64,000 nt of DNA from Anthoceros angustus (GCA_010909165.1 VJWM01000044.1:1984001-2048000), one strand, 5' to 3'. Shown: positions 36,056 through 64,000, counted from the stretch's first letter. Numbers and translations: made by a program. Notes: generated from the sequence alone by a model not told the origin.

Positions 36056-36234
36056 ATAAGCAAAAACGCCATTGCCGGAAGACATATTCCAGCACTATCA
36101 CCACCCTCCATGGTGATAGCGCTAGTTATAGGGCGAGGTTAATATGTTGTATAAGATTGGTACTTTGTAAGTTCCCAAGTATGGGGCGAGCTTGACTGGT
36201 AGAGTCATTCGGCTAAGAGAGATAACGAGAGACT

Positions 36235-36992
36235 ATGCATTTTATTTTTCATATGTTAGAAGAAGAAGAAGAATATATATCTAACAGGCCTTCATGAAAA
36301 TAATTTATCATATTTTAGATCAGGTAAATTTATAAAGATTATTTTACAATTAAAATTAAAATTAAGTTTATTTATATATAAGTTAATTAGTCCAACATAA
36401 ATCCCACTCCTATCCTTACCCTTCAAGAATGACATCTAAACAAGGGTCCATTAAAACTACACAATGGGACAGTTGTTATCCATTCCCGGCTACTACCTAT
36501 AAAAATGTACCTAAATCCGCAATCAAGTTCACTGTAAAAACCCTGGTGCTAGTTCACAAGAATCACAACCGTTCCAGCATCCATTAAAACTACACAATGA
36601 GATAGCTGTTATCCATTCCTGCCTACTACCTATAAAAATGTACCTAAATCCATAATCAAGTTCAATCAGAAAACCTCGTGCTAGTTCACAAGAATCACAA
36701 CCGTTCCAGCATCCATTAAAACTACACAATGAGATAGCTGTTATCCATTCCTGCCTACTACCTATAAAAATGTACCTAAATCCGCAATCAAGTTCACTAC
36801 AAAAACCCCGGTGCTAGTTCACAAGAATCACAACTGTTCCAGCATCCATTAAAACTACACAATGAGATAGCTGTTATCCATTCCCGCCTACTACCTATAA
36901 AAATGTACCTAAATCCGCAGTCAAGTTCACTATAAAAACCCCAGTGCTAGTTCACAAGAATCACAACCGTTCCAGCAATTGCAACCTCTATG
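36235..36992. repeat. Dispersed repeat block, copy 1, containing four tandem ~133-bp units (36448-36978)
   Basis: Units start CCATTAAAACTACACAATG at 36448, 36581, 36713 and 36846. The block is homologous to 54610-54962 in the same orientation. Confidence 0.9.
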
Positions 36993-37139
36993 TGGCAACA
37001 ACATGCCATGTCATCACTTGGTGATGTGGTGGTGATGTGGCACCACATCACTTTATTGACATGGCACTGGAACTGGCTATGTCAATAAAGTGGTGACGTC
37101 ATGAAGCTCTCGGTTTTACAACGGTGTTGTTGCGCTGTT

Positions 37140-37502
37140 TTACAACGCCGCATTGTAACACCCATTGTAAAAGCCCTCATTTTCTTGTAGTGAACGTTGC
37201 TCCTGAAATCGCACTTTAGTCAGCTTCAGTAGACACATCAAGTTACAACAAGGCTTCTTTAAATCCACTGTCATTATGTCCCCATCACTTTTTTTCAATG
37301 ACACTCCAGCACCGAGTGTCTGGTAGTCGTCCGCATCGTCTTCGTCCCCAATGGGCCATTCATGAACCGGTGTGTGCAGGCGACTAACATCAACTACATG
37401 AAACAAGCCTTGACGTGCAACCGTCGACCCATCTTCACGGGGAGCGTCATTCACACCTGTCGCACTAGAATCTTGATGGCATTTAGATGGGTTTCCCTCC
37501 AA
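37140..37502 (-). pseudogene. N-terminal fragment of a third Sola-like/DUF7869-type transposase
   Basis: KKPCCNLMCLLKLTK matches SKPCCNKLCIRKFTR of the transposase at 48.6 kb. The ORF truncates immediately afterwards, next to hairpins at 37032-37092. Confidence 0.55.
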
Positions 37503-39538
37503 AGCAGCTGTGGGGCAACTTTTGCTAGCGGACTAGTAGGGTGCCCACTTATAACCCAATATCGATGTGGTACTGGGGTTCATTCCACAGGGAATGGACT
37601 TGCGATTGGCGTGTGTCACACAGCAACTCAACGGACCAGACACACAACCCCCTTGGACCTTCCACAAAGCTTCGCTCATAGTATCTTAAACATTATTCAA
37701 GGTCCGACGGACCAGAATAGGTTTAGTGACGCGTTCCTTTGTCAGCCTCCGTACCCTAGCGCCTCGGTGCACATACCTCCTTAGCTCCGCATCTTCCAAC
37801 CCACAACCCTCGACTCCACTTAACAGCAACTCCAACGCAACGCACAATCTGCGATGCCTTCAACATGGTATCTTTCGAAGGGGTTGAATATCTAAGAAGA
37901 GGGTTTTGTGACTTTTATCTTCTAAAGGAGGTTTCACATGGGTTTTGTACTCGTGGTTTTTGGGGTACGGGTGAATTTAAGGTAGAAAAGAAGGGTGACA
38001 ATTCGTGTGAACTAGTGATACAAGGTCCATTTCATGCCAGTGAAGGGTTATGGTCTAAGAGTTAACCTTATTTGGGGTGCATTTAAGACCCATGACAAGG
38101 ACCATGGCTGCCGGTCATTGCCGGTCATTCTTCAAAACATTGCAACCAATGGTGTGACACCATGTTTTTGTGATAAATTTTTAGAGCATGCCAAGAAAGG
38201 TTAGTTTTAGACCCATGAGAAACCCTCTTCGAAGGATAAAAGCCACTAAACCCCCATCGGGTATATTACGCCCCTTGTAAAATTATCGTGTTGAGGTATG
38301 TATGAGCCAGAAGGACTCTTTGAAAGCGCAAGTGGTTTCTTTGAGTGCTCGTAGGATGAAGACCAAAATTGGAGCATTCTTGGCACAGGGCCAACAAATT
38401 TAAACCCTTGATAATGTGTGGCAGCCTTCCCAAACTCCGAATGATGATGAGACTGGCGTGAACGAAGACTTAAGGGCTTTGGGTGAGAACGACAGCTTCG
38501 ATGAACAAGAACTGGAGCGAATTCAAAATTTGGCCGTTGACAATGTTATGGATTTAGAGTCCGCTCAGGCACCGGATGAGTCACAAGTTAGCCTTGATGA
38601 ATAGGTTTTTCTTTTTGTAGGCACCTCCATGTGCTTGTTCTCAAAGTCATTTTTCTAGCAATGTTGGATGGGATGTGAGCTTGTCAGCAGTTGCCCATAC
38701 CTTTCACGTGTTAGTTTTAAATTGTGGACCAGTTGCATTGTGACAATGGATTTCTTCACTTTGCCTCTTTTCTCAAAAGACCAGTCAAGGCGCCGGCCGC
38801 TTTGACTGGGTTTTCTAGTCGTGATGTGTTCAAAACAAGCCTTTACATTTGCCACGTTCAGACAAAGGGTTATATTTACATGCAAAGAGCTAAAATGCAT
38901 ATTTTGGGACTGTGTCGGATGTGAGAAGGGGGTTCAAAACCCAAAGAAGCTTAAGGGGGTTTGGATATTCACCCCCTTCAAGAAATACCATGTTAGAATC
39001 GCATTGCAGTGGTGAAGGTGGTTGGTGCGATAACAAAACCCCGTATGCATGGACGAGCTAGGAGCCAAGCACCTGCTCCCTTACCAGAACAAGAGCGAAG
39101 CCGAGCTTTGTGGACCTAGGGATGGAGGAGTCCAAGAGGACAGACTTGAAAGCCAGGCTAAGTTGCTTCTTGAGCAGCGATGCCTGCAACCCCCTGAAAC
39201 CTTTGGTGATGAAGGTCGAAAAGGGAGGTAGTTCCTACCGAGCGTCCGCAAAAAGTATACCCCTGGCCTGTCAAGGAAATTTGGAGGGGGAAGGTTCCCT
39301 CCTCCCCACCAGTTACGAGATCCTCCAGAAAGGGCCTATCCTGAAGGATGAAGCGAGAGGCCAAAGCAGGGGCTGAGAGGGCCCAGCTACCTAAGAAAGC
39401 CGCCAGGAAAGAAACCTCCTGTGAAAGTAGGCCGGTGCCCCCAAATTGCATTGGCATTGTCGCACGAGGTAAGCACTTGAATTCATATAAGCACTTCCTC
39501 GACAAACAACCAAGCAAAACAAATCTAACACGCAGATA

Positions 39539-39742
39539 TGTAGTGTTTTGGGAATATCAGATCAACAGATCGCGTACTCAGCAGAACTTGCAACGTGAGA
39601 GTGTATGTTGATTAAGGAGAGAACACAGATATGAAGTCCAAGTCTCATAAAACGGTTACAATAGAAAACTACCTAAAGGGTGCCCTAATGACAAACCCTA
39701 TGTATATTACAATGAACTAATAAACAACTATTATTTCTAACA
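39539..39742 (-). repeat. 3' LTR (204 bp)
   Basis: On the minus strand it starts TGTTAGA immediately after the polypurine tract CAATGAGAGGGGG (39743-39755). Confidence 0.95.
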
Positions 39743-40010
39743 CCCCCTCTCATTGAATATACGGTATATTAGCAAAATGACGATTAAACCAAAGTAATTG
39801 TCAAACTCTAATTAGGGCGTGTACTCATTCACAAACGATGATCAGGTCTTCGTTAGTCTTACGCTCACTCCGCTGTGTGTGCCTCCAGCTTCTGAGACTG
39901 TGCACGATACGCTCCTGTCTTCGTGATGTCTGGTTCCAGAGCAGCTCTCATAGACCTATCTGCTTCTGAGGACACTCCGCCAGCTGAGGAAATCCATAGC
40001 GCATCTGAGG

Positions 40011-40786
40011 ATGAGGTGCAAACACAGGAAATGGAGGACGCTACTCGCCGCCCACCGCTGCAATCTCCGGCATGGCGGGCGCTGTGACGACGCCGCAAGT
40101 GTCCGTGATTTCCTCCTGCCCTATCCATCCAAAGGAGGCTATACGCAAGATGACCGTGAGGTGACCGACACGCAGAGATGCCTGCAGAACGCGAATGAGA
40201 GGGAGGCAAAGCTGGTGCAAGAGGTTGCTTATCTCAAGCGAGCTACTGCAACATCTTCCAAGCCTTGCTCCACCATAACTATGCTAAGACGCATGAGAAA
40301 CCATGATGAAGGACACAGTGGTAATTCCTGAGAACTATGAGCCCAGAGACTTCAAGCTACCTCTAGGTCACCTGTACAAGATGAGAAGGGTAGTGACAGA
40401 CGGAGATGGTGCCAACGATCCTGGAACACCTGAAGTTTATATCTGTCCTATCTCAAAGGTGACCATGTTCAGGCAAAACTGGTGGAGATGGGGAGGACAG
40501 GATGGAAATTTTGTGTCCTATTATGGTAAGGTTTCAGCATGTCTAATTTGTGTGCCCACTGTTGTTGTGGTTTGACCCTGCTATTGACATATGCATCGGG
40601 TGTCCAGTATCACGAGAGAGGATGGCTGAGGAGTCAGGCATGGTCTGGATGGACGAGAATGAAGACGTATCAGAAGATGACAAGCCTGACTTTGACCCTA
40701 ATTCCATTGGGCTCCAGAAAACGAACAAGAGAGGAAAGTCAAGGGCTCTGTCCCCCTCTACCTCCGAAGGTTCTGAGAAATTCTAA
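40011..40786 (+). CDS. Spliced, frameshifted accessory ORF antisense to the LTR element; unknown product
   Basis: Overlapping ORFs 40011-40331 and 40303-40525, a phase-consistent 82-bp intron GTAAGG(40526)..TCCAG(40607), then VSRERMAEESG...SEGSEKF*. The true start is uncertain. Confidence 0.5.
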
Positions 40787-41490
40787 CCACTCTAAGGGAT
40801 GGTCACATAAATAGAAGCTAGTATTAAGTGAACTTCAGCTTGTCTACCTACAGACTCCTCTGACAAACTCTCTTACTTTTTGTGGGACACGTTTGGTGTG
40901 TGAAGTGGTTCTAAGACACCCAAGGCCTCTTTGAATTGATAATGCTTCGCCCTAGGTAAGGATTTGGTACAGTATATGACATTTGGAATCTGTGGCTGTG
41001 ATTGTCGGGTTTGACATTCCGCTATTTTGGGCTTTTATGCAAAACAACCCAATTTTTCCTGTAAAAACAGGCCAAAACTGAGATACAACAAAATCATGGC
41101 CTTACATGCTGGGATCCACAAATCTGCCAACTCTGGATCCGATGGAACGATGGAAGTCAAGAAAACTACATTTTATTGTCATGATAAACTTGTACCCTGT
41201 TTACACTGTCAAAGGCTGGAATCCATTTACCCGCATCGGGGGTGGTGTATGAGCTGTGACATGTACTCCAAACACAGAGGCGACTTGGACATGTTTGTGG
41301 GATATTAGCACAAATTTCTCGTACTTCCCTCTTGTCCTTCCATCATGTTCCACTCATGTGTGTCGTCCAAGGGCATACACGCGTTTGAATGGTTGCATTT
41401 GGCTTCATCGGTATACATGAATGAGAGGGGCGCGTGCATACCGCGCCCACACACTCATGTAAACCGGTCAAGAAAAGGATGTACATGAAG

Positions 41491-44400
41491 CTAAGGGTCG
41501 TCTTCAATAGCCACATGAGCGTCATCTTCAATAGCCACCTGATCGTCGTCGTTGTTCGCCCTTCCATGGTCTTGGTTCGCCTCCATTGGCACATCTTCTT
41601 GCACGGAGCGGGCGTCATAAGATTCGCTGATGATTGAGCGTGTTTGGGCCTTCAATTTGTTTAGTTCGAGTTAGTTCAAACCCATAGGCCAAAACAAATG
41701 TATCGACAATGATCGACATCGCACATTCTTCTTGACCTTCTAGTGCCTCGCAACGCCTTGTCCGTGCCCTAAAAGCACTTGCAGCAATATCATCTCTTCC
41801 ATGTACCTTCCTTCAAAAGCGTCGTGTTCGTGTCACCCACGGTGAACTTTCATGAAAGGTGATTCGCTTTTCGAAATCTATGTGAAGGACCTTTGCAATC
41901 CGAAAGGACGATTGGTGCATCATTTTCGCAAGGCGCTATCATATTTCCGCCGCAATCTCAAATATCACCATTTAACCTCTCTTGCTCTTAAGTCGGAAAT
42001 AGCTCGATAGGTTCCTACATACATGTCTCGTCTAGGCACTTCTCGCACAATGGATGAGGAAGGACTTCAACATCCGGAGCAAGCCAGATCTTGCGGGATC
42101 TCTCTTCTTCTTGATTATACCATCGCCAAGGATTCTTCAATTCCTGTAGGGACCCTGAATTTATCCTTTCCACAATGCCCTCTTGTTCTTCCCAAAACGA
42201 TTTCCACCACACATCTTCGCCGTCGCCCAAAATGTCTTTTAATTTCTCCTCCAATTTGGCCTGGATAACTGACAATGACCTTCCAGCATCTCTTCCTTCA
42301 GCATGTGCGTTTTTGCTCCTTACTTCCAAAGACATCAGAGGGGCAGCAAAAATTGGTCCTTCGCACATGCTTCAAGAACTCGAGGCCTTCATTGGTGGAC
42401 CAGTAATGTCAGTTGAATATTGTTTACCTCGCATCAAGTAATGAAACCGCGTTCCTCCCTCTCCTCTCGAGTTATTTTGAACCGATCTTTGAAAAGAAAT
42501 GTTGTGCAAGCGATGCCGGTGACTACAGTTGGTAGCCACTACCATTAGGGATGGGCCAAACATACCTTCTAAAATCGGGGACTTGCACCAATACAATCAT
42601 GGGTTTGGCGTATAAGCACTTTCCAACACAGGTGAGTTTGGGCAAGGTAAAAGCCTCCTTATGCCTTAGCACGTCAATCGGAGAACATTTGGTCTACTGA
42701 TCATGGGTGTGCCCAACAAGGAGGAAGCCTACCTTGATCTTCTCAAAGACTCGCAATGACACCAACATGTTAAGGTAGGCGAACAGCAGAGCGTTTTTAT
42801 TTTCACGTGCCGTGTTGTCCAGTTGCAAATATAACACCTTCGGAAGTAAACCCTCGTAGTTCAATATAACATGTTGTATGACGGCGATTGTCAGGTTTGC
42901 GTCGTTCCTGATATTTCCAAACTCGATGAACAATTTTGCTGACATAGTATAGTTGTATACAAGACAGCCAACAACATGGACGTCAAGAAGCGGAGTGTCG
43001 CCATATTCTTTGGCGGATGCATGAAATGTGGGAAGGTGTCTGGTCCATTCCGTCTATAGAGTCCGAGATACCGTGGGTTTGCATAACACTTGACCCGATG
43101 CTTCATGCACTTTTCCTCTCGCTTTTAAACGCTCTGTGGTTTCGCAAATCGGCTTCATATTCTTCTGCACGCTCAATGAACCAAGGAACAACGCAACTGT
43201 TTAGTATGGCAACAATCTGGGAACATGGCATCTGTAGTAGCAAGTGCAAATGAGAATGGCCAAGTCTTGTTGGTATCTGCGCAGCCTGACCAGTGCGCGG
43301 TATCTGGCGCACTTGGCCATGACCTTTCCCGGATCGCGGTATCTGCGGCTCAATTTTCAAACAACATCGTACCTTGTTTCACGCGTTCTTTCTCGCTCCT
43401 GATCTTCCGTTTAAGGTAGTCGCATGTAGCACTGCTGCAAGCGATTATTTTCGGGATCCTTACTTTGAAGTGATTACGCCACAACCGCAAAAGTAGGAGT
43501 GTGAAATATTGTCGCCAGCCCGCGCATTTGTTGCTTGTATTCTTGAAATATTTCTCCTTTGGTATAAGAGTCCAGGAAGGTGATACGCTTCAACATTTGG
43601 CATCCGCTCTGCGATTAACATGAACAACTGGTTCATCCACGTCACTGCAGTGGAAGCATGGTACGTCGGTTGCCTCTCGTACCGGAGGAGGGCAGACTAT
43701 GGTATATTATCTGCGGCTCTCTCCTTGGCTGCTTCGTACCGATTTGAACCTATACAAAACACCCTCCTAAATGCTTCGCGACAAAGATGAACTCTGTCTC
43801 TTCCAACTAAAGTCTCCACCTTCAATCCGCCATGTTTACGCTTCGATGAAAAGAAAAGTGATTGCAAAAACGTTTCCTGCTCCCGCCTACTCATCCGAAG
43901 GAAACGATATCTCAGGTCTCGGAAGGTGGGTTTACCTAGCAGGCGCAAACAGCATTTAGCACAATACAACTTTCTGAAATCACGAGATACCCGACTTTCC
44001 AAGCATTTGAGTTCCGGCACCTTGGATTTCTTTTTTCCCTGTCGTTGGGTCCGCGTTTCAATAAATGTTTCTGATCTTGGCTTCATATTAAAAGTCCGTC
44101 TGCGGGGTGGCTCGACTTGGAAATCACCTGAGTCACTGCTGGAAAGATCATCATCACACTGAAGTGTATGTGCCTCCAGAGGTTTAAACAGATGTCGTCG
44201 AGATATGGGGGGCCTGACATCTGCATTCACGTTTACGCCGAGAGAAGCACTGAATATGATACGAGGCTCTTCTTCTTCCCGTCTTCGCATTCCCAGCGGC
44301 GTGGTCTTTTGAACTTCCGGAACGTATGGTGGCAATACTCTTGGTGCGGTGGGCTGTGAATGGCATCCAAAAGGCGCTCTTCGGGAGACATCATTAAGGA

Positions 44401-44556
44401 TTTGGAGATTGCTGGAGATCCGCCAGACAGGCCTGCAGTTCCTGTAGCATACAGTCCCATGACATGAAACATATTACACGACTTTAAGCGATGTGAAGTC
44501 GTATTTGCGTTGTTGGATGCAGTGGCCTCACCTTCATCACTTTCATCTTCGGTCAC
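41491..44556 (-). pseudogene. Transposase T1, Sola-like/DUF7869-type DDD transposase, frameshifted, with intron 43165-43372
   Basis: MPPYVP; CAKCCL...REQETFL...LCREAFRRVFCIG; WMNQLF..IAERMP..YHLP; KVRIPK...TCDYL; IDGMDQ (~43040-58); LYLQLDNTARENKN; FLLVGHTHDQ(V)DQMFS; WWKSFWEEQ...NPWRWY; acidic tail with stop at 41491-93. Confidence 0.8.
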
Positions 44557-45151
44557 TTCGTTAGGAGCCCTTTGGTCACCATCTCGCCTCTGTAAACAAG
44601 GACGTCCGGAGTGTCAAAGAAATGAAGACATCATCAACAAATCACAACATAATGGCTCAGCGTTTCCACCCGTTTCCCTCCGCTACTTTCAGCACATATA
44701 TCGCCAACTTGTTCTGCAGACTTCTCCATTTGTCTTCCTTCCTCCAAATGGTTCACAGTGGGAGGAATGGGGATGCTTTGTACGAACTCTTTCCAAGCAC
44801 GCAACATGTTCGTGATGTGGATTCAAAGAAACCGCGAGGATATAATTGTACAACGGGAAACCCCATTTCTTAATGAGTGTTTCCAGATTTGGAAGATATG
44901 TCGGCAGTTCGTGTTGTCATTCTCTTGGTGCCAACAGGATCCATTCAAATGTGATCCGCCTTCAAAGGTTTGTTGTTTCATTACTAATTTTGGTTGCACA
45001 TGGATATGTTTCCGTTCCCTAATATCCCGACGAATTCGGGTGTTTGAAATGAGTGTTCCCTCCAATTCATTTTGGTGAAGGGACAAGACACTCTTACCAG
45101 CGCATGCCACCTTCCTTTCTTTTCCCTTCCTAGACAAGGCCGTTAGTTTCC

Positions 45152-45910
45152 ATGGCGAGCGGACGCAGGAGCAAGAAAGCTGTAGATGCAGAGGTGGTTG
45201 AGGCTCTGGAGCTGCCCAAACGGTTGAAGAAAACAAGGAATGAAGCTCAGGCAAAGGCAAGAGCAGCAGGCGTCGCAACGAATAAATCCACAGTGCTCAC
45301 GGCTGTGCCATCTGCCCCTCCAATTCCAGCACAGGCGATTTCGCAGAGGAAAGATTCGTCTCATGGAAGTGTGCGTGCTTCCACATCAAAAGCGTAATGT
45401 GGACATGATTGGGGATGCACAATGGAATCCAGCAGGAGGGAGTACTGGGGGAAGTGGAACTGGATTGGGTTCGCTCCCTAATCCTTACAACTTCCAAGAA
45501 TTGCAGAAGGTGAGGTGATTGCAGGAAAGTTTGAAAAAGCGCTTCTTAATAGAGAAGGAGTGGTCTCACGATGACATGGAGCCGAAGACGAGTCAACTCC
45601 TTGGAATCCACTTATGGCGTTATGGGTAAATGGCTATGAAGGAAATCCGAGGATGAGAAAGCGCGTGTAGGGTGGATCATGTGGGTGACGGTGGATGGAG
45701 TGGATGACGAAATGTTCCTTCACTTTTGGTAACTTTACATCCTCGGTTTCATATGATGATGTAGATAGTCATATCATGTTTGTGCTAGACGCAAACAAAG
45801 CGATTCGATGTGAACCGGCGTACATTAGAGACCCTCTTCGGTTTTCCGTTCGATTGGAAGACGTAAGTGCAGACGTTGCCATACCTGACATGCATGTTTC
45901 GAATTTTTAG
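45152..45910 (+). pseudogene. Frameshifted coding-like region upstream of the ParB-like gene; unknown product
   Basis: MASGRRSKK... basic N-terminus, then frameshifted pieces NPYNFQELQK, LKKRFLIEKEWSHDDMEPKTSQLLGIHLW and ARVGWIMWVTVDGVDDEMFLHF. Confidence 0.35.
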
Positions 45911-46031
45911 GGTTTGTAAGAACTTATGTTGTGGTGAATGACAGGGAGGGGAGCAATTCTATCGAACGCTCCTAGGGTTTGTTTCACAAGGAGTCACATC
46001 AAACCGTGCGGAAGTCGAGCGCCTTGCAGTC

Positions 46032-47701
46032 TTGGCAAGGCAATCTTCTGCTCAAGTCCAGTTTGCGCAGCCTCTCACAATCGAGGAAGAGGAAGGCATA
46101 ATGGTCAGGAGAATGCAAGCCGAGGTTGAAGAGGATGAGGTCCCGTTACGCCTTTATCCACAGGCGAAGGCGGCAGCAAAGCTCGGGTCATGTGTGGCAA
46201 GCTCTGGGCGAGGCCTTGGGTCAGGGCGGCGGGGATGAGGGCGAAGATGTTGAAGAGTCTCTCCCGGTGAAGAAAAAGAAGGTGCGCCGGCCTACCGGCG
46301 CACATGAGGGGAAGAAGAAGGGAAGACAATCAAAATCTCCGTCGAAGACGAGGAGCAAGCAAGGTGGTAAGTCCAAGCATGCTTTCAGCCCTAGCAGGCG
46401 ACCCAAAAACATGGAAGAGTTGAATCACTTTCGACTATCATGCATTTGACACCGTTGAAGAGACGAGCGGATGTGGAGCAGGTGCATGTAAAAAAAGGGA
46501 AGCGAGGGAAGATACCGGTAGTTGGTGATGTCGCAACACGTGCTGTGACAACAGATACTGAGAGACTCCAGCAAAGCTATCAGGGCCGGGACAATTTACA
46601 GAGGATCAGGAACTCTGCACACAAGAAGAGGGCCCTGAGCACAACTGTAGATGTGCATGTGGAAACATTGCGGCCAGCTTCTTTCTTAACTGCGGATGCT
46701 CAAATCCGAAAAGTGGATGAGGCATGGATGAAGTCCCTTGTGAGGCAGATGCAGGTGGGGACGGTAAAGGAAGGAGTTTTGCCCCTACTATGCATGATAG
46801 ACCCTAGCGAGTGCGACAAGGTAGAAGAGGTGTCAGAGAAGAGACTGCGAGAGAATGGGTACACACTCGGAGTACTGGGGGGCAATCACTGTTATCAGGC
46901 GATGAAAACCTTATGCGAGATGCACCCAGCAGAGGATAAATATCAATGGATGGAGGCACATGTGTATGCGGGTTTAACAGAACCAGAGATGAGAGTCTTG
47001 GCAGTGGACCACAACGTCACTGCAGATAGAAGGAAGAAGCTCAACTTCATAGAACAAGTGCGATACATTCATGACGAGCTTGAAATCCTTCGGCGAGCAG
47101 ACCCTACTGCCAAACCATCACTGCGGTGGAAGTTTGATATTTATCGCCTTCTTGGTATGGTTGACGAAGATGGAGACACGGAAGACACTGATTTTGTGCA
47201 GAAAATGGTTGACCGCAAGACCCTACCATTGAGGATTGCCAGGTGCCAAGGAAGACTGTGGGAAAACGTGGACACTATTTTTGCTATGTGGGAAAGATGT
47301 GAACTCTCGAAGCAAGCAAACCAGGTGGCTCCAAGCAATGTGAAGAGGTCAAAGGCAAAACGGAAGCCTGTTCCGGCAGCTCCCGTGGGGACAACTAGTA
47401 CTTCGAGTGCTCCCCCTAAGCCAGCAACTTTGCAGTGAAAACCATTTCGAGCATTCCAAGGAATTCCTCCAGGCGACAGAGGTGAAGACATACTGATTGC
47501 TGCAACGCAAAAGGTTATCCAAGGAGACATTCCTTTGATGGGTATTGTAGAAGAGGTAACAAACAAGAAGACTCTTCATCTGATCCAAGTTGCAATTATG
47601 ACGCATTTGAAGTGTACCAGTTTCGAGTCCTGCTGCGAATTATATCCAAAGCATACGACAGACAGCGAGCTAGCCAAATTTCAGACGGCATTCTCCAAAG
47701 T
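46032..47701 (+). pseudogene. Gene with a basic low-complexity N-terminus and a ParB/Sulfiredoxin-like domain (core ~46647-47015), frameshifted
   Basis: 332-aa ORF 46440-47438 contains VDVHVETLRP...IRKVDEAWMKSLVRQMQ.G..LPLLCMID...LGVLGGNHCYQAMKTL...MEAHVYAGLTEPEMRVLAVDHN, which follows the ParB N-terminal pattern. Flanking frames continue the protein both ways; splice donor at ~47702. Confidence 0.65.
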
Positions 47702-48336
47702 TGTGAGTAACATCCTTTTTGTTTTCTTTGTTTGCTTCAACTAATCGCAGAGTGCGAGACACCGGCCATCGATTCTAGACGGAGTGCGCCGGCATACCAA
47801 CGACTGCTCGGCCCCCAGAGTGCGCCCGGCATACCGGGCGCACACGGGCGCTGCTCGAGTGCGCCCACGCGCACTGCATTCCAGATGCGCCGCATACCAA
47901 CAGACTTCGGCAAGACGCTGGGCGCGATACCGGGCGATTGGCGTCGGCTCGAAAAGCGCCGCATACCAAGACATAGACCCAAGGCGCCCAGAGCACCCAT
48001 CCTTGCCCAGCCTGCAGATGCCGGGCGATTGAGGCTTTCAGAGAGTGCGCTGATAGCACCTTCACTGTCATAGTGAGTTTGTAGTAACCCACCTTTTCGT
48101 TTGAATTGCAGAAAGAGTACCTGATCCCCGTAAACAGAGTGAAAGGCAAGCGGGCCCTCCGCCTCGCCAGCAAATGCAAAGTCCTTGCCACTCTCCACGC
48201 CACAAAGTATGTATTCTTTGGCCGATAGCTGAGTCGTCGAGGTGTCGCCTGCCATACTCATTGGCATAGGTTTGTGTTAGTGGCTCGATCCTGTGATGCG
48301 TGTGTCCAGGTGGAGAAGAACTCACTCACGCCTCGT

Positions 48337-51300
48337 ATGCCCAGCTATGTTCCCCGACTTCGTGAACCCGAACCTCTACTCGCCATAGATAGAAGCCCGT
48401 CCGGAAGGAGGAAAGTTGAAGGGTGGAGTGTATACCGCGAGGGATTGTTCACTACTATTTCCAAAGATCAAGATGCGGGACGCCCAATGCAGATGAGGAC
48501 AATGTCTTCCGAGACCCCCAACCATTGAGAAGTTTGGACCGGCCGATCCGTCACTTTCCATCCAAGCCTTTGGCCGATACCTTTCAGCCTAGCAATGTGG
48601 GCTTCGTGCGCGAGCGGCTGTGTGTCTTTGAGGAAAAGTGAAGGCGATTCCGTGGGAGAGGATTTCAAAGCCTTGTTGCAACAAATTGTGCATCCGCAAG
48701 TTCACAAGAAGCTTTTCAGCAACGAGTTTTCGAGAATGGGCACCCGAGCAAGAGACATTTCGCATCACAGGCGGCCCGACTTGCCACAACAAGGGATGTG
48801 GTTTTCACTCACCTCATGGGTCGATTCCTATGCAATGTTGTTTGAAAGCCTTCCGACGGTATATCTTGAGGGTCCGCAAGGTACGAGGAGTTGAAGCGGA
48901 GGGTTATTCAACGCACCATGGGACGCTAATAAGGCCAGCCCTCGTACAATCCTCCCATGCTTTGGCTGCAATTGCACGGATGGATGCGACTTTCCTTCAC
49001 TTGGCCGAGCGCCGAATGTGGAGGTATACAATCTACGACACTTTCACGAAGCATGAGGTTTGGATACAATACAGAGTGGAATGGAGTCAAAAGGTGAACG
49101 CTTTGTGTCGTATGCATATTTCTTGGGGTCGAATTTCAAGCGGTGAAGATACCCAAGTCAAATGCAGATTCGACTTGTTCCATATGCTGGCTGAAGTTCA
49201 ACATACGGAGCACCGATCTGGAGTTGACCAAGGTAGGCCTCCTCCCGACTATCTGGTCAGATGCATGGCATAAAAGCATGTGGAGTAATGGAGGAGTTAG
49301 CGGATGTACGCCATCATGCTCCGGCGGGCGGCGATGTCTCGAGTCGCCGCCTCCGTTGCTTTGTGGCGCGCGGGAGCCCTCCACCGCAGAAAAAGGAGCC
49401 GCATGGCGGCACCATATTGTCTGGTGAAGGGTACTGCATGGCGGCGCCCCAAGTGACAAAGGGATGTCGCCGTGCCGCGCCGTTTTGTGCCGTGGGGGCT
49501 CGGATGGCCTTGCCTCAATGGCGTATGCGAGCCGGGCAGCCGCGCCCTCATTGTGGCGGAGAGGGCGTTATGGGTGTTATCCACTCCACATTACAGCGCG
49601 CATGCCGCGCCCCAAATGTGGAGTGCACGAGGCATGGCGATGTTCCCCCAATGTAATCGCAGTCGTGAACTACGGGTGCTTTGTTGTGCAGATGAGGAAG
49701 CTTGCGCCTCCTCGGCATGCCGGTGCCCGTGATGCCCGAGCCTCCAAGCCGCGGAGGTTCACCGGCAGCTGGAAGGGGCATGTCGGCGCCCGCGTGGGAA
49801 CCATGGTTTGGGTACTCCCGTGCAACATTGACTTCTTGCGTGCGTCGCCGATTGTATGCATTCTTGTCACTATGCATTTGGACTGTGGAATAATAGGCAG
49901 CAGTATGCGTATGTCCTAGTTTCTGATCTCAGTTTCAATGCACGACACTCCAGTCTTCCCAAATAGCTCTGCTGTCTGCAAAGATATTGAATTTCGGTGC
50001 CCACAAGTCTCACAATGGTGTTCCATGACATACAGCTATGTATCAAGAGGCACTCAACAAGCATCGGATACGATTGATGGAGGAACGGAAGAAGTTGACG
50101 AAGCATCGGTCGAAGTCGTACAAGGAGCCGCAGAAATATATGTTGTTATCTATCGACGGCATGGACCAGAAAAAAACTTCTCTGCCGCATATTTTGCGGT
50201 GGCCAAAGGACTTGAAGGAGGATAGTCGGATCACAGTGCATGTTGTTGGATGCATGATACATAATTACACGTTCAGAGCGCGCGATTCGCATTATGCCAA
50301 TCTCGTGAATGATGCAAATTTAACAATAACTATTATCCGTGACGTTATACACACGTATGAAGGGATACTTCCCAAAGTCTTATACCTTCAGCTGGACAAT
50401 ACATGCCGAGAGAACAAGAACCAGCTTCTATTTGCGTACTTGAACATGCTCGTTGAACTCGGGACGTTCGAGAAGGTGAAGGTTGGATTCCTCCTCGTGG
50501 GGCATACGCACGACCAAGTGGATCAAATGTTTTCATGTTTTCTAAGCATTTAAAACATAAGGAGGCCGTGACATTGCCAACTATGGAGGACATATTGAAG
50601 TCCTCGTTCACGAATCCAGAGGTGAAAGTGTTGTGAGGTGGCGACTTCCGGACATACGTATGGCCATTACAGTTAGTGAACGCGTCGGAAGTACAACCGC
50701 GGTCCGGAAGTTGAACAACCTTTCATTTCAGCACCAGTTCAAAATCACCCGCGAGGACAAAGTTGGGCGGGGAAAGGTTACCGTTATTCGTAAAAGCAAT
50801 ACTCCACTTCCCCTTGTGGGAATCAAGATGGGCTCGAATTCTTGACTTTTGTTCCGACACACGCCATCGGGCCCGCTCCTTTGATGGCATTGCGGCGAAG
50901 GACAAGAAAGCTAGTGATGGTGGTTTGACCGCACGTGAAGGCGTGGATCACTTGAAAAAGGATCGTGAAGCGCCAACATATTTGACTGTGGAGGAAGAAT
51001 GGTGGATGGATTTCTGGAATGATCAACACGAAATCGCAAATATTGTGGATCATAACATTGGGCTTGTTCTGCAAAACCCCTGGAGATGGTACGATAGGGC
51101 TGCCGCTGAAGCCCGAGTCCCCCCTTTGCACATACCGGAAGAAGCTGTACTGGACGAGGCTCTTTTGCGTGACATACCACACAGGGACATGTATCTAGGG
51201 GCCTACCAAACTATTGAACGCCAAGAAGAGGTGGCAAGAAGGATGGATGGTGATATTATGGAGATACAGAAAGGAATGTTTATTGTGACACCGTGCGAGG

Positions 51301-52277
51301 GTGACACACACAATAGGCGCCTGGGTAGCGAAGGTTGTAAGTGTGCACCTTTGAACCGTATTTGCTTGTGCATGGTGGCGAATCGAGCACACGGATGCTT
51401 ATGAGGGCAAGTATGTTGGAGAATTTTTCAAAGGAGAATGACAATGGACCACCCAAAAAGGTCGGAAAGGGAAAGGGCCCCAACATCCAAAAGGTTTTGT
51501 GCGAAAACCATTATTATATACTACGGGTTTCATCACTTGAAAAAGGATCGTGAAGCGCCAACATATTTGATCGTGGAGGAAGAATGGTGGATGGATTTGG
51601 AATGATCAACACGAAATCGCAAATATTGTGGATCATAACATTGGGCTTGTTCGCAAAACCCCGGAGATGGTACGATAGGGCTGCCCGCGGTCCCCCCTTT
51701 GCACATACCTAAGAGTCTTGGACGAGGCTCTTTTGCGTGACATACCACAGGACATGTATCTAGGGGCCTACCAAACTATTGAACGCCAAGAAGAGGTGGC
51801 AAGAAGGATGGATGGCGATATTATGGAGATACGAGAAGGAATGTTTATTGTGACACCGCGAGGGTGACACACAATAGGCGTTAGGTAAGGTTGTAAGTGT
51901 GCACCTTGGGGCCCGTATTTGCTTGTGCTGCGGTGGCGGGCGAGCACACGGATGCTTATGAGGGCAAGTATGTTGGAGAATTTTTCAAAGGACTAAAATG
52001 GACCACCCGCCAAAAGGTCGGAAAGTGAAAGGGCCCCAACATCCAAAAGGTTTTTGTCGAAAACCATTATTATATACTACGGGTTTCACTCACTTCAGAA
52101 ACATCTATGCAGCAGATAAGAAAGCTATAAAGGAAAAGTTGAGTGCGCTCGTCCTCACATTCAACCAAACACTTGGATGAGGCAATGGAGAGTGATGAAG
52201 ATGGAGATGAGGCCTGTGTGAGGGACGAGGGTCTCGATTCAAAGCGAGTAATGACATGTGCTAAGCAACTGAAATAA
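48337..52277 (+). pseudogene. Transposase T2, Sola-like/DUF7869-type DDD transposase, frameshifted, with intron 49233-50035 and an internal 585-bp duplication
   Basis: MPSYVP; KPCCNKLC...EQETF; VKIPK...TCSIC; YMLLSIDGMDQKKTSLPH; LYLQLDNTCRENKN; FLLVGHTHDQVDQMFS; WWMDFWNDQ...NPWRWY; acidic C-terminus. Confidence 0.82.
50947..52092. repeat. 585-bp tandem duplication inside T2
   Basis: ATCACTTGAAAAAGGATCGTGAAGCGCC at 50947 and 51532; the second copy has many 1-3 bp indels. Confidence 0.9.
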
Positions 52278-53076
52278 CAAGGGAACCTTATGTTTATCCC
52301 TAATTTCTCTTCATGGCATAGGGTTTGAAAGTCGGACACCAGAGGTGTCGGGCATAAGTTTCATGTTCTTGTCATACATTGTTTTTAAGACATGCAGGAC
52401 CACCATGCCGTCGATGAGTACATCTTAAATGTCACCTTGTACCGTCTACCATGTTTTGGCATGCGAATACACCGCGCAATACATTTCATGATTACACAAT
52501 TGCACTAGTCATAACATTTGCCGTTATATAAAGAATCGTGACGGCGACATGGATCGCTTGTGCTCCACTTTCCACCCTCTAGACGCCATATGCTCCCATC
52601 GTGTTCGCTTCCGCCATCGATAACATGCATACATATCCGCTTCATGCGCCGTCAGAGCTCTCAAAAAGACGCCGATGCCGCGCCATGCCACACCCAACAA
52701 TCGCCAGATACATTTTCTACCGATATGACAACCTCTACAAAACCCATACCATAGTTGTCTCCATGTGTCTCCATGTGATTTTAAATGCGTGATTTCGTTT
52801 GGCCACAATGATTGCAACACAAGCCACCGAAACTCGAACGACGCCTTTTTTCCCCGCAATGAGGGGAGAGAACATGGGTACTTTTCTCGAAACGCATGAT
52901 AAGCCAGAGAGCACCGCTTTTCCGAATCAGATGGCACAATCCGTGTCTGACGGTGATCTTCACCCTTATTTTCTCGCCGTCACGCCTAATCCCAAACATG
53001 CCGCTTTGATAACCATCTTAAACCCCGGATCCACGATATAGACCGCACCGCTTCATGTATATTCACCGCTCAAATA

Positions 53077-53631
53077 TTATGAGGTTAGACCCATGATGCT
53101 CATATTACAACTTCTCGACTTAAAGAGGAATGCATTTACGGCGAGCCAACCGCTCCTCGAGGTCACAATGTCTTGTTCTTGCTTCGCCATTGTCATAAGA
53201 TCAGAAACCCGCAATCTCTCAAGTCGATCCTGTCTTGACTGTAGGTTATCAGCACACGTGGTGTACTCCAGCAAAGTGCTCCGCACATTCAAGATGGAAT
53301 TGAGAATAACATCATGTTCAGTAAACCTTTCTTGGTAACGCTTCAGATTACTGGATTGTGCAGAGTTTGATGGAATTGGATTTGTATGCTAATTCCTGCA
53401 GACAGACCTCCTCCTTTGGGGTTGATCAAATTCTGATTCAGAATCCCGGCCTTCCTCTGCAGGGAATTGAGAATTGATAAGGACGTAGAGGAAACGTGAT
53501 CTTTCAATCCTTTCTGCAGCGGAAGCTCCTTTCTTGAAGTATTTTCTCTCAAATGCAGTCTGAGACGACTGTCTGAATTTTTCCGTATCAGACTCAGGCC
53601 AGGATTGCCTAAGATGATTTCTGCGAGGCAT
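53077..53631 (-). pseudogene. Short interrupted ORF just downstream of the PBS (gag position), coiled-coil-like
   Basis: ATG 53631 lies about 90 bp after the PBS: MPRRNHLRQ...*...LKRYQERFTEHDVILNSILNVRSTLLEYTTCADNLQSRQDRLERL. No CCHC knuckle seen; the gag identity rests on position only. Confidence 0.35.
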
Positions 53632-53722
53632 CCTTCCTATACGCAGCTAGGGTTTCAGCTATCTTATGCATGTGACAATGGCTAGGGATAAACTAATGCA
53701 AGCAAGGCACAGGCCGCACATG

Positions 53723-53734
53723 GCTCTGATACCA
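53723..53734 (-). promoter_or_regulatory. Primer binding site complementary to initiator tRNA-Met
   Basis: TGGTATCAGAGC on the minus strand, directly after the 5' LTR. Confidence 0.93.
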
Positions 53735-53938
53735 TGTAGCGTTTTGGGAATATCAGATCAACAGATCGCGTACTCAGCAGAACTTGCAACGTGAGAGTGT
53801 ATGTTGATTAAGGAGAGAACACATATATGAAGTCCAAGTCTCATAAAACGGTTACAACAGAAAACTACCTAAAGGGTGGCCTAATGACAAACCCGATGTA
53901 TATTACAATGAACTAATAAACAACTATTATTTCTAACA
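53735..53938 (-). repeat. 5' LTR (204 bp)
   Basis: 199/204 identical to 39539-39742; followed by the PBS on the minus strand; flanked by TSD AGATA. Confidence 0.95.
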
Positions 53939-54609
53939 AGATATATAGGTGCAAACCAATAACAATAGGAGCGAGTAGCTCGCACATTGTGACACAAACA
54001 CACTCCCCACGAGAACAACACGCAAATTACTCACACATTGCTCTCGGAGTCATAGCTTTGGCCCCCTCACAACATCTTTGCATTGCATATCTAGAGGACA
54101 AGCTATGATCTTAGCTTGTCCTATGTAAAAGAGTCTATATATACTAGCTCTTGGCATCGGCACATTCCTAAGATATCCTATTGGCATCGGCATATGCCGG
54201 AAATATTTTAAGAATACACTATAATATGCAAGGAATATGCCAAAGCATATTACTTGAGCTTATCCACTTAGCTATTACTAACAATGTTTAATTAACACTA
54301 ATCAATGCTTAATTAACATAAGCACCTTAGATTAATTAACACTAATTACTTACTTAAAGATAAGTAATGAGATTAATTAATGCTAATCAAACACTAAACC
54401 CAAGTGCAGAGATTAGTGTCACACAGCATGACAAAACTGCAGAGTGAGGAGGATCCCAGACGAGGACTAGACATGCACTTGGAGAGCTTGACCTTTAAGC
54501 CCACCAAAGAAAGCTCATTAGAGAAAAGCTCGAAGGCCTCCTTGACCTTGTCTCAAGGCCTGAGGATGTGAGAGTCGTTTGCCAGTGACGGTCTGATAAT
54601 TGAGAGAGT

Positions 54610-54962
54610 ATGCATATTGTTTTTCGAATGTTAGAAGTGTATAATCTAACAGGCCTTCATAAAAATAATTTATCATATTTTAGATCAGGTAAATTTATAA
54701 AGATTATATTTATAATTCATATTTATTGAAATTAAATTTATTTATATACAAATTAATTAGTGCAACATAAATCCCACTCCTATCCGCACCCTTTGAAGAA
54801 TGACAATCTAAACGAGGGTCCATTGAAACTACACAATGGGGATAGCTGTTATCCATTCCCGCCTACTACCTATAAAAATGTACCTAAATCTGCGGTCAAG
54901 TTCACTATGAAAACCCCGGTCCTAGGTCACAAGAACACAACCGTTCTAGCAACCTCTATGTG
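54610..54962. repeat. Dispersed repeat block, copy 2 (single ~133-bp unit)
   Basis: Homologous to 36235-36992, including TCTAACAGGCCTTCAT, TTTTAGATCAGGTAAATTTATAAAG, CTACCTATAAAAATGTACCTAAAT and the common end GCAACCTCTATGTG. Confidence 0.88.
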
Positions 54963-60929: not shown

Positions 60930-63900
60930 CTCTGCCGGGCCTCTCCGTCCGGCTCAGACGCCTCTGAGTTCCTCCGGCTCACGCTCCGGCCCCGACTGGG
61001 CCGCCTCGACGCAGCAAGGGTCCCTAGTCGCTCTTCCCTGCACACACCACCACACGTTAGGGTCCGTCACCAGGACCTTGATCGCCTCCGGTGTCGGCAC
61101 CGCCGATGACTCAGACTCAACAAGAAGGCAGGGCACTGCAAGAAGACGCAGCATCAACACCAAGAGAAAGATACTTTACTTAGAGCGACCTCGGCCCTCT
61201 TATACTACTCAAGGTCGCCATTATTACACCTATTCGGTGATGGCCAGTGCCCTAGTCGGCCGCCTACTATTTCCCCTTATTCCCCTATCTACGTCGGTGG
61301 TGGGGTGGGTTGCCACGATTCCGCCTCGGCACTGTGGCCCAATTCCCGACGGCGGCGCACGCAATCGGATGATCCGCGAGGCGGACCCTTCCTTCCGGAA
61401 TCCTCGTCGTTTACACGGGCGGTCGACGACCGCGGTCACCACGACGCCTTCCTCCCTCGCCCCGAGTGGGTCCCTCTCGGTAGGGCCACCGACCGTTGCT
61501 CCCCCTGTAAGCCTGGAGGGCTCCCCTCGCCTCCCGAGTCCGGACCTCGGGGTCCGCTACGGAGTCGGACCTCGAGGTCGGTCTCGACTGAGTCCGGACC
61601 TCGGGGTCAGTCTCGACTGAGTCCGGACCTCGAGGTCCGGTCTCGACTGAGTCCGGACCTCGAGTCCGGACCTCGGTCCGGTCTCGACTCCGAGTCCGGA
61701 CCTCGGGGTCCGGTCGACTCGAGTCCGGACCTCGGGGTCGGTCTCGACTCGAGTCCGGACCTCGTGGTCCGGTCTCGACTCAGTCCGGACCTCGGGTCCG
61801 TTCCGCTCACGCCGATCTCCCTCGGATCCATCCACGCAATGCCCGCCCCGGACTCGTGGTGTCCATCCTCAGCCAAAACCCGCAACAAAATGAGCTCAAA
61901 GCAAGTAACCCAAAGCCAAAACCCCGGCGTCTAAATCACACACAAAGCTCCTGCCCCCACCTTAACAAACAAGACCAGCCAATCTCTTTCTCCAACAACC
62001 AAGACGATCGCTCCGATCCAATGGCAACAGGCAATAGCAATGGCTACGGCGATGAAAAGCCGAGCACTCCTCCTCCCCTCCAACGAGCTAGCTCAGAATG
62101 AAACAATCACTCTCCTTCTTGCGTGCAAGCAAGCAACCTCCTCCGTTCCCTCGCCTCCCCTCCTCCCGTCCACGGACTAGAGACAAACCAGAGCTCCACC
62201 GAAATAGGCTCCCAGGTGCACTCCCGAGTCCGGACCTCGAGGTCTGGTCTCGACTCGAGTCCGGACCTCGAGGTCAGTCTCGACTCGGTCCGGACCTCGA
62301 GGTCAGTCTCGACTCGGTCCGGACCTCGGGGTCGGTCTCGACTCGGTCCGGACCTCGGGGTCGGTCTCGACTCGAGTCCGGACCTCGGTCGGTCTCGACT
62401 CCGGTCCGGACCTCGAGTCCGGTCTCGACTCGAGTCCGGACCTCGGTCCGGTCTCGACTCGGTCGGACCTCGGGGTCAGTCTCCTCTCCGTCCGGCTCAG
62501 ACGCCTCTGAGTTCCGGCCACACGCTCGGCCTGGTCTGACGTGGGCCGCCTCGACGAGCAAGGGTCCCTAGTCGCTCTTCCCTGCACACACCACCACCGT
62601 TAGGGTCCGTCACCGGGACCTTGATCGCCTCCGAGTCCGGACCTCGGTCCGGTCTCGGGACTCGCGTTAACAAGAAGGCACGCAAGCTGCAAGAAGACGC
62701 AGCATCAACACCAAGAGAAAGATACTTTACTTAGAGCCATTTCTTATACTACGCCAAGGTGGCGTCATTATTACCCTATTCGGTGATGGCCAGCTGGTGC
62801 CTAATCACCGCCTACTATTTCCCTTATTCCCCTATCTACGTCGGTGGTGGGGTGGGTTGCCACGATTCCGCCTCGGCACTGTGGCCCAATTCCGCTTGAC
62901 GGCGCGCACCCAATCGGATGATCCGCGAGGCGGACCCCTTCCTTCCCTTCTCAGTTACACATGGCCCCGACGACCGCGGTCACCACGATGCCTTCCTCCC
63001 GGCCCCGAGTGGGTCCCTCTCGGTAGGGCCACCGACCTTGTTGCTCTGTAAGCCTGGAGGCTCCTCGCCTCCCGAGTCCTGACCCTGGGTCCGGTCCTCG
63101 ACTGAGTCCGGACCTCGAGGTCCGGCTCGACTGGAGTCGGACCTGGTCCGGTCTCGACTCTGAGTCGGACCTGGTCCGGACCTCGACTCGAGTCCGACTC
63201 CGAGTCCGGACCTGGGTCCGGCCTCGACTCCGAGTCCGGACCTGTGGTCCGGTCTCGACCTCGAGTCCGGACCTGGTCCGGCTCGACTCGAGTCCGGACC
63301 TCGTGGTCCGGCCTCGACTCCGAGTCCTGGACCTCGGTCCGGTTCCGCTCCACGCCGATCTCCTCGCATCCATCCACGCAATGCCCGCCTCCGCAGCCTC
63401 GTGGTGTCCATCCCAGTTACCAAACCCGCAACAAAATGAGCTCAAAGCAAGTAACCCAAAGCCAAAACCCCGCGCCTAAATCACACACACAAAGCTCCCG
63501 TCACTGCCCCCACCTTAACAAACAAGACCAAATGTAATCTTTCTCCAACAACCAAGACGATACGCTCCGATCCAATGGCAGCAAAGTGCAATAGCAATGG
63601 CCATGAAAGAAAAGCCACAGGCACTCCTCCCCTCCAACGAGCTAGCTCTAATGAAACAATCACTCTCCTTCTTGCGTAAGCAAGCAACCTCCCTGCTCGC
63701 CTCCCCTCCTCCTCCCGTCCACGGACTAGAGACAAACCAGAGCTTACTCGAAATAGGCTCCCAGGTGCACTCCGAGTCCGGACCTGGGGTCGGTCTCGAC
63801 TCCGAGTCGGACCTCGTGGTCCGGCCTCGACTCCGAGTCCTGACCTGGTCCGGCTCGACCGAGTCCGGACCTCGTGGTCGGTCTCGACTCCGGTCCGGAC

Positions 63901-64000
63901 CTCGGTCCGGACCTCGGGGTCGGTCTCGACTCCGGTCCGGACCTCGGGGTCAGTCTCGACTCGGTCGGACCTCGAGGTCCGGTCTCGACTCGAGTCCGGA
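60930..64000. repeat. ~1.55-kb tandem repeat (two copies, continuing off the edge), each with two arrays of a quasi-palindromic ~30-bp subrepeat
   Basis: Landmarks recur at about +1545-1550 (CTCTCCGTCCGGCTCAGACGCC ~60941/~62484; AAGAAGACGCAGCATCAACACC ~61140/~62691; GGACTAGAGACAAACCAGAGC ~62174/~63723). Subrepeat arrays at about 61540-61800, 62225-62480, 63070-63340 and 63770-64000. Confidence 0.92.

Follow-up and report, generated by a model that had tools for sequence, protein, structure and literature searches.

In a stretch of 64,000 nucleotides from the land plant Anthoceros angustus (GCA_010909165.1 VJWM01000044.1:1984001-2048000; hereafter the window, with positions counted from its first letter), the block at 41491-52277 contains two transposase-like genes, T1 on the minus strand and T2 on the plus strand, with a ParB-like open reading frame (ORF) between them. 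The present analysis suggests, with a probability of roughly 0.8, that this block is a graveyard of mobile elements of one known kind, dead and rearranged, and not a working module. T1 and the ParB-like ORF would be the remains of a single Sola1-type cut-and-paste transposon, the accessory gene of whose family encodes a ParB/sulfiredoxin (Srx)-fold domain fused to a phage-type N4-cytosine/N6-adenine (N4C/N6A) DNA methyltransferase, and none of T1, T2, and the ParB-like gene is able to make a full protein. The block in turn forms the interior of a non-coding retroelement on the minus strand, bounded by long terminal repeats (LTRs) and similar to the terminal-repeat retrotransposons in miniature (TRIMs). 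The coordinates of the features are collected in Table 1.

T1 and T2 Are Decayed DUF7869 Transposases

In the ORF listing, both genes appear as a series of pieces, located at 43697-44335, 42694-42945, and 42015-42368 on the minus strand for T1, and from 48274 onward, at 50038-50553, and at 50763-51404 on the plus strand for T2. They start with the motifs MPPYVP (at 44335) and MPSYVP (at 48337), respectively, and the catalytic cores of both match the Pfam family DUF7869 (PF25273), at 3.8e-28 for T1 and 1.1e-35 for T2. In a translated comparison (tblastx), the two genes are collinear over eight blocks, with 58 of 75 residues identical in the core block, which can be compared with the 57 of 70 counted by eye in the original prediction. 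The ORF pieces, the Pfam matches, and the collinearity thus bear out the description given there of T1 and T2 as paralogues with a common order of motifs, namely MPxYVP, the Cys clusters, IDGMDQ, LQLDNTxRENKN, GHTHDQVDQMFS, WW..FW, and NPWRWY. No match between T1 and T2 was found at the DNA level in a self-BLAST at E 1e-10, and they are therefore either old paralogues or members of different subfamilies.

About 120 relatives can be aligned to both loci, the closest full-length ones being the metagenome proteins P0081 and P0082, of 905-908 aa and with 52-55% identity in the core. The relatives with a DUF7869 domain come from Chara, Cymbomonas, molluscs, cnidarians, echinoderms, amphioxus, and many plankton metagenomes, a host range that fits a eukaryotic mobile element. 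The term "DUF7869" itself was not found in the literature searched. Over 117 aligned members, the three aspartates of the T2 core, D40 (in IDG), D120 (in LDN), and D162 (in DxDQ), are conserved at 98-99%, together with a GHTH block; T1 keeps the DDD motifs as well, but frameshifts split them. The aspartates of T2 are spaced by 80 and 42 residues. The corresponding spacing in the Sola2_DFa-2 transposase, with D326 (MDFKEN), D413 (SDGAKHFKS), and D456 (YHGKSDVDRHF), is 87 and 43 residues (supplement of PMC3627910). This closeness supports the earlier assignment of T1 and T2 to a Sola-like DDD family at the level of motif architecture, which is not the same as a scored test of membership. The passage of PMC5751038 that cites Majorek 2014 gives Sola1-3 as RNase H-like.

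The extent of the decay is seen in frameshift-aware protein-to-DNA alignments with the 908-aa relative P0082 as the reference. Relative to P0082, a minimum of 11 frameshifts and 2 in-frame stops was counted in T1, of which at least 9 frameshifts and 1 stop fall within residues 309-727 and the other 2 frameshifts and 1 stop nearer to the N-terminus. The corresponding minimum for T2 is 8 frameshifts and 1 stop; the stop and at least 6 of the frameshifts are found within residues 330-847, and 2 frameshifts in the N-terminal part. These figures are conservative, because the counts rise when the frameshift penalty is lowered. In T1, the motifs RYLGL, SIDGMDQ, and TFPHF each lie in a different frame. 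Since the shifts in the two genes fall between adjacent codons within conserved motifs, they do not represent introns, and both T1 and T2 are pseudogenes. T2 has in addition suffered a tandem duplication in its C-terminal region, with copies of ~570 bp at 50947-51544 and 51532-52101. The extent of the frameshifting, this duplication, and the LTR pair with its flanking target-site duplication (TSD) discussed below had all been missed in the original prediction.

At one and the same position, the coding sequence is interrupted by ~830 bp in T2, by ~214 bp in T1, and by ~400 bp in the homologous gene of the metagenome locus L003. Because the three genes share the position, the interruption in T2 is probably a conserved intron that has become enlarged.

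The ParB-like Gene Is Truncated

The ParB-like ORF has no Pfam match, and the ParB_N model is matched by none of the 67 members of its family. Searches of the PDB sequences with the family by phmmer and hmmsearch were likewise negative, and a word-indexed protein search with the ORF returned no close full-length relatives. An exhaustive search of protein representatives, on the other hand, gave 66 homologues, with E 1e-10 or better for 17; among the homologues are several proteins of Chara braunii and one of the fern Adiantum. Seven of the 66 carry an N6_N4_Mtase domain (PF01555), located C-terminal to the shared region. An alignment of 36 sequences of the ParB-like domain shows the conserved motifs GG[NG]H, VYAGLT..EA, and HN.

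The AlphaFold model of the ORF has a mean predicted local distance difference test (pLDDT) score of 87 when the family alignment is supplied, compared to 40, which is unusable, when it is predicted as a single sequence. In a Foldseek search of the PDB with the former model, the top ~50 matches are almost all ParB, Noc, KorB, Srx, PadC, SerK, and pNOB8 ParB structures. The eight best structural alignments obtained with VIA-align are to PadC (Z 9.5), KorB (9.0), Arabidopsis sulfiredoxin (7.5), the N-terminal part of pNOB8 ParB (7.3), SerK (7.3), human Srx (6.6), SbnI (6.3), and Atu1540 (6.2), the first match outside the ParB/Srx superfamily coming at Z 4.8. The neighbours of the model in the ESM Atlas include clusters of ParB_N, DndB, and phage ParB_N plus N6_N4_Mtase proteins. 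At the level of the predicted structure, the ParB/Srx fold is thus confirmed for residues about 71-200 of the ORF, in agreement with the earlier reading of the ORF as ParB-like.

The arginine motif GxxR/GERR of the canonical CTP-binding ParB proteins is not present, and the corresponding position reads GGNHC here, the two glycines and the histidine each being at least 90% conserved across the 36 members. The GG[NG]H motif looks closer to the GGCHR pattern of sulfiredoxin. Residues 130-222 of the model form a helical domain, for which the matches are weak (Z 3-4.8) and mixed, several of them being to winged-helix or helix-turn-helix proteins.

The ORF had been presented as a ParB-like gene, and a frame of 332 aa does exist; it is, however, incomplete, since its last codon is a premature TGA. 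P0002 and P0005, the closest homologues, can be aligned in frame through this codon to about 47715. A total of 13 family members match the region of 47.4-47.7 kb, and none of them matches further downstream. The frame beyond the TGA stays open and ends near a GTGAGT splice-donor-like site at 47704. Sequence comparison with the family members detected no methyltransferase similarity anywhere in the window. These observations indicate that the ParB domain and the middle region of the gene have been kept while the enzymatic half has been lost. As judged from these alignments, the ParB-like ORF is a truncated gene with one nonsense codon and without its methyltransferase half. We have also considered the TGA to be an artefact of an intron, as an acceptor-like TTGCAG occurs just before it; this was rejected, because the homology is kept only in the read-through frame.

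The ParB-like frame has one lesion in 1.3 kb, where 4-6 would be expected at the rate of T1 and T2 (roughly 3-5 per kb). That 999 bp have stayed open amid such decay could be taken to mean that the ORF is an exapted host gene, whose methyltransferase-less product has been kept as useful. We consider this to be very improbable, given that the ORF is ended by a nonsense codon inside conserved sequence, that it lies inside a retroelement, and that the word-indexed search of proteins yielded no close full-length relatives. Moreover, no public RNA run matched the ORF, the sole match being a DNA-contig run with a word share of 8%. Short contigs of that run match the T1 core, the region 44459-44995, and the 3' part of the ParB frame at 90-99% identity. 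The T1 and ParB sequences are therefore multi-copy, and the contigs carry no information on expression.

The Transposase and the ParB-Methyltransferase Gene Are Regular Partners in One Clade

The relation between the two genes can be seen at related loci. In the metagenome contig L003, a transposase gene and a 789-aa ParB-methyltransferase gene lie on opposite strands with their starts 2.4 kb apart. They are arranged head-to-head also in Cymbomonas (L005), and in Chara (L001) they share a strand, at a distance of 8 kb. When metagenome contigs were scanned with the alignment of the transposase, 80 loci were obtained; a scan with a narrow ParB alignment gave none. Among the loci of the clade closest to P0082 that have more than 3 kb of upstream DNA, the ParB gene is found upstream of the transposase in nine of nine, on the opposite strand in eight; the closest-clade members for which no ParB match was obtained have less than 2 kb upstream. 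The ParB part is the one nearer to the transposase, and the methyltransferase part follows beyond it wherever the contig is long enough. Of the nine loci in the more distant DUF7869 clades that have comparable room, one or two show a similar arrangement. The ParB gene is accordingly a regular partner of the transposase within one DUF7869 clade and rare in more distant ones, so that the partnership proposed in the original prediction holds, with this limit. The one closest-clade locus that deviates in strand is L021:902-3380, where the upstream ParB-methyltransferase gene has the same orientation as the transposase.

The layout of the family is one transposase gene placed head-to-head with one gene for a ParB-N4/N6-methyltransferase fusion, at a distance of ~2 kb. 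In such an element, the transposase would cut and paste the DNA by means of a DDD, RNase H-like active site. The ParB part may bind the element's own DNA and the methyltransferase may mark it with N4-methylcytosine or N6-methyladenine.

T1 on the minus strand and the ParB-like ORF on the plus strand fit this head-to-head design, as their starts are 2.1 kb apart, which agrees with the 1.9-2.4 kb found in L003 and L005. T2, which is on the plus strand, is on the wrong side to be the partner of the ParB gene and abuts the point of truncation, and we regard it as an extra fragment from a second, divergent member of the family. This differs from the composite module of two transposases flanking a ParB gene that had been put forward, because every related locus in which both genes were found has a single transposase gene. 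The idea that the inverted T1 and T2 act as the arms of a functional composite transposon, mobilising the ParB gene between them, is suggested by the mutual inversion of the two genes around the ORF. It is scarcely credible in view of the frameshifts and stops throughout both transposase genes, the lack of DNA-level similarity between them noted above, the absence of terminal inverted repeats (TIRs), and the single transposase of the related loci.

The divergent region between the starts of T1 and the ParB-like ORF had been thought to harbour an "unknown ORF". ORFs of 60-107 aa are indeed present there, but they have no family match and no counterpart in related loci. Conversely, the middle ORF of L003 has no counterpart in the window. 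The flanks and spacers (39.7-41.5, 44.4-46.4, 47.4-48.3, 49.3-50.0, and 52.1-53.7 kb) have no tblastx match in the related loci or in the remainder of the window.

To the right of the truncated ParB gene there is a cluster of GCGCC(G)GCATACC-type motifs, which is followed by T2. The 14-mer of this type occurs in two exact copies, both within the cluster, and there is no exact or closer match elsewhere in the window. The cluster could be due to chance, or it could represent an array of binding sites such as has been proposed for algal transposons that bear a ParB gene.

Some of the loci inspected show further arrangements. In Chara braunii, two ParB-methyltransferase copies (L002:10115-12168 and 36058-38094) and further fragments are found within 50 kb; these copies are annotated as one 1825-aa gene over 29.5 kb, probably a fusion of several transposon copies in the gene model, and no DUF7869 similarity was found within L002. 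In a marine metagenome contig (L007:1087-9177), a Ty3/gypsy-type pol gene (protease, reverse transcriptase, RNase H, integrase, and chromodomain) is immediately preceded, in the same orientation, by a distant DUF7869 gene, and the second of these two ORFs also has a faint match to a Dam methylase.

The Block Is Enclosed in an LTR Retroelement

Table 1. Features of the LTR-bounded unit and of the block inside it.
Feature	Position	Strand	Basis
TSD AGATA, left copy	39534-39538		read directly; identical AGATA after the right LTR
LTR, 204 nt, TG...CA; 3' LTR in the element's own orientation	39539-39742	-	direct repeat; ends read
Polypurine tract (PPT) GAGAGGGGG (minus strand), abutting the left LTR	39743-39751	-	sequence read
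T1, DUF7869 (Sola-like DDD) transposase pseudogene	41497-44335	-	Pfam, frameshift-aware alignments, tblastx against T2
Divergent intergenic region, 2.1 kb, from T1 start to ParB start	44336-46439		short ORFs only
ParB/Srx-fold ORF, 332 aa, premature TGA at 47436-47438	46440-47438	+	homologues, AlphaFold model, fold matches
Predicted ParB/Srx-fold domain proper, model residues 1-130	46650-47039	+	domain alignment and structure alignment
Continuation of the middle region of the ParB-methyltransferase gene beyond the stop, same frame	47439-47715	+	P0002/P0005 alignment
GCGCC(G)GCATACC-type motif cluster, four to five copies	47786-47969	+	repeat listing, sequence read
T2, second, divergent DUF7869 transposase pseudogene	48337-52277	+	Pfam, alignments; 3' end coordinate from the original prediction
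T2 interruption, ~830 bp, GC-rich	49212-50037	+	tblastx and frameshift-aware alignments
Tandem duplication of the T2 C-terminal region, period ~570-585 bp, 89% identity	50947-52101	+	self-comparison
Primer-binding site (PBS) TGGTATCAGAGCCA (minus strand), abutting the right LTR	53721-53734	-	sequence read
LTR, 204 nt; 5' LTR in the element's own orientation	53735-53938	-	direct repeat; ends read
TSD AGATA, right copy	53939-53943		read directly

The region 39534-53943 makes up the complete frame of an LTR retroelement, which is TRIM-like and non-coding and lies on the minus strand. Its two LTRs, the only copies of this sequence in the window, are 97.6% identical over 205 nt and bound a unit of 14.4 kb, of which the interior (39743-53734) makes up 13,992 bp. 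The PBS is of the classic plant type, complementary to the 3' end of the initiator tRNA-Met. None of the ten interior ORFs matches gag or pol, the scan having covered ORFs of at least 60 aa, so that decayed relics could escape it.

The original prediction had noted that no TIRs or TSD could be recognised by eye, and the searches of 39.7-53.8 kb gave the same result. The long inverted pairs in this region mostly reflect the coding homology of T1 and T2, and none of them looks terminal. A candidate TIR motif, AACAYGATAATTTT, has its only exact match at 38279-38292, outside the block, where AACACGATAATTTT matches exactly on the minus strand, 1.2 kb outside the LTR element.

Two scenarios can be envisioned for how the block came to lie between the LTRs. 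In the first, a non-autonomous LTR element of the TRIM type or of the large retrotransposon derivative (LARD) type already had dead Sola-type DNA as its interior at its last retrotransposition. This scenario concerns the position of the block and is compatible with the identities assigned to the genes above, and we hold it to be quite possible, at somewhat less than even odds. A single matching 5-bp TSD surrounds the whole unit, a PBS and a PPT abut the nearly identical LTRs, and the scanned ORFs of the interior contain no gag or pol. Furthermore, T1 and T2 carry 3-5 lesions per kb, beyond what a divergence of ~2.4% between the LTRs would allow since insertion. The divergence being far too small for this load of lesions, T1 and T2 must have been dead before the LTRs were last identical. 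The unit also shows no TIR/TSD signature of a recent DNA-transposon insertion inside it, which speaks somewhat against recent nesting and somewhat for travel as the interior of the element. Against this scenario stand the size of the interior, which in TRIMs is typically a few hundred bp, and the fact that the element is seen in one copy, the LTR occurring only twice in the window. In addition, T1, although in sense to the LTR transcript, keeps its ~214-bp interruption at the conserved intron position, and there is thus no sign of splicing during a passage through RNA. We have considered that such a passage had removed the T1 intron, which is unsupported for the same reason. The more specific proposal that a TRIM-like retroelement packaged the ~14 kb of dead Sola1/ParB-methyltransferase DNA, and that this was copied here by retrotransposition, is tentative and stands well short of even odds. 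If true, it would mean that an RNA-based element has moved the remains of DNA transposons in a land plant.

In the second scenario, a small TRIM-like LTR element was present first, and Sola-type elements that were already defective then inserted into its short interior and later lost their ends by deletion and rearrangement. Nested transposable elements are the commonest cause of such arrangements. The T1 and ParB-region copies with 90-99% identity in another run indicate that the family has been active fairly recently, and in Ectocarpus giant Sola1, KDZ, and EnSpm elements with pseudogenised transposases are mobilised in trans (PMC12477816). However, at an LTR divergence of ~2.4% the TIRs or TSD of a later entrant should still be recognisable, and since none were found we regard this sequence of events as unlikely on the whole.

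Returning to the assignment of the block as the dead and rearranged remains of Sola1-type elements, a number of observations weigh against it. No TIR with a flanking direct repeat or TSD was found in 39.7-53.8 kb for either DNA-transposon unit, and we thus infer the boundaries of the units and their status as separate insertions. Some of the frameshifts counted in T1 and T2 could be artefacts of the alignment or of the assembly. The membership in Sola is drawn from the spacing of motifs and from the published naming of a similar element rather than from a scored comparison with curated Sola1 references, and a profile search of the PDB sequences with the DUF7869 transposase core gave noise only. 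Finally, the small number of lesions in the ParB-like frame means that it may be younger than its neighbours or may have been longer under constraint.

As to the surroundings of the LTR element, related repeat DNA with 85-89% identity is found in the same orientation on both sides of it, at 36227-36994 and 54602-54962, and tandem units of ~133 bp occur at 36424-36977, which suggests a location of the element within or close to a satellite-like array. The end of the window, at 60940-64000, is GC-rich (59-62% GC) and consists of a direct repeat of ~1.5 kb (60940-62440 and 62483-64000, 84% identity), itself built of tandem units of ~110-140 bp. Scans with Rfam models and for tRNA genes found nothing.

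Comparison with Known Systems

The closest known system is the 21.5-kb element Sola1-1_Ec32 of Ectocarpus, in which a gene encoding a ParB-like protein plus a DNA methyltransferase lies opposite to the transposase (Genome Biol 2025, PMC12477816). The pairing, which had been thought to be undescribed, is thus already published for algae. The same paper reports similar proteins from green and red algal transposons, citing Iyer et al. 2011 and Petroll et al. 2025, and proposes that the ParB-methyltransferase proteins bind and modify their own element (PMC12477816). As in Sola1-1_Ec32, which is a large element whose transposases are often pseudogenised, the family considered here combines a Sola-type transposase with an opposite-strand gene for a ParB-like plus N4C/N6A-type methyltransferase protein, and T1 and the ParB-like gene are head-to-head. 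The comparison is with the published description of Sola1-1_Ec32. Unlike that element, the present one resides in a land plant and not in a brown alga, and the copy here is without the methyltransferase half and without recognisable ends, has a premature stop, and has a second transposase fragment joined to it. No paper describing the pairing of Sola1 with a ParB-methyltransferase gene in a land plant was found.

With the Sola2 elements of Dictyostelium fasciculatum, which carry Fanzor1 (PMC3627910), the transposases share a nearly equal DDD spacing and an H-x3-D-x-D-x2-F pattern at the third aspartate, and those elements too are large and have accessory genes. The motifs around the aspartates differ, however, being IDGMDQ, LDNxxENKN, and GHTHxDxDQ here instead of MDFKEN, SDGAKHFKS, and YHGKSDVDRHF in Sola2_DFa-2. 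Also, the Sola superfamily (Sola1-3) is characterised by DDD transposases and a 4-bp TSD, whereas neither TIRs nor a 4-bp TSD are found at the present locus.

In the family, a ParB fold at the N-terminus precedes an N4/N6 amino-methyltransferase, and the domains have the same order in the ParB_N plus N6_N4_Mtase fusions of phages and prophages. Eukaryotic methylases have been traced to phage ParB-terminase loci by Iyer et al. 2016 (PMC4738411). Unlike the phage fusions, the eukaryotic family falls below the Pfam ParB_N model, has GG[NG]H in place of GERR, bears introns, and is carried by transposons. A further parallel is offered by Plavaka, a CACTA-related group of transposons. PAG3 of the giant Plavaka transposons of red algae is a ParB-domain accessory gene with adjacent repeat arrays (Bostrychia preprint, 10.1101/2025.02.11.637652). 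Common to PAG3 and the present family are a ParB-like N-terminal domain and a nucleic-acid-modifying enzyme on the accessory protein of a DNA transposon; in the present copy, a small GC-rich motif cluster lies just downstream of the ParB-like gene. PAG3 belongs to another transposon superfamily, and its partner domain is a 2-oxoglutarate (2OG)-dependent oxygenase and not an amino-methyltransferase.

The LTR element resembles the TRIM and LARD elements in its 204-nt TG...CA LTRs, 5-bp TSD, PBS, and PPT and in that no gag or pol was detected. The interior of a TRIM normally measures a few hundred bp, and the LTRs of LARDs are long; the present element is thus unlike a TRIM in its interior of 13,992 bp of DNA-transposon remains. 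The value of the locus, which is dead and without the enzyme half, is that of a genomic fossil and of an example of transposon remains within an LTR-bounded unit, and not that of a system open to functional tests. Transposons that encode an amino-DNA-methyltransferase linked to a ParB domain may bind their own DNA and mark it, and marking by N4-methylcytosine and N6-methyladenine in eukaryotes is contested and poorly understood. To the algal examples of the Sola1/ParB-methyltransferase pairing published in 2025, the locus adds a record from a land plant.

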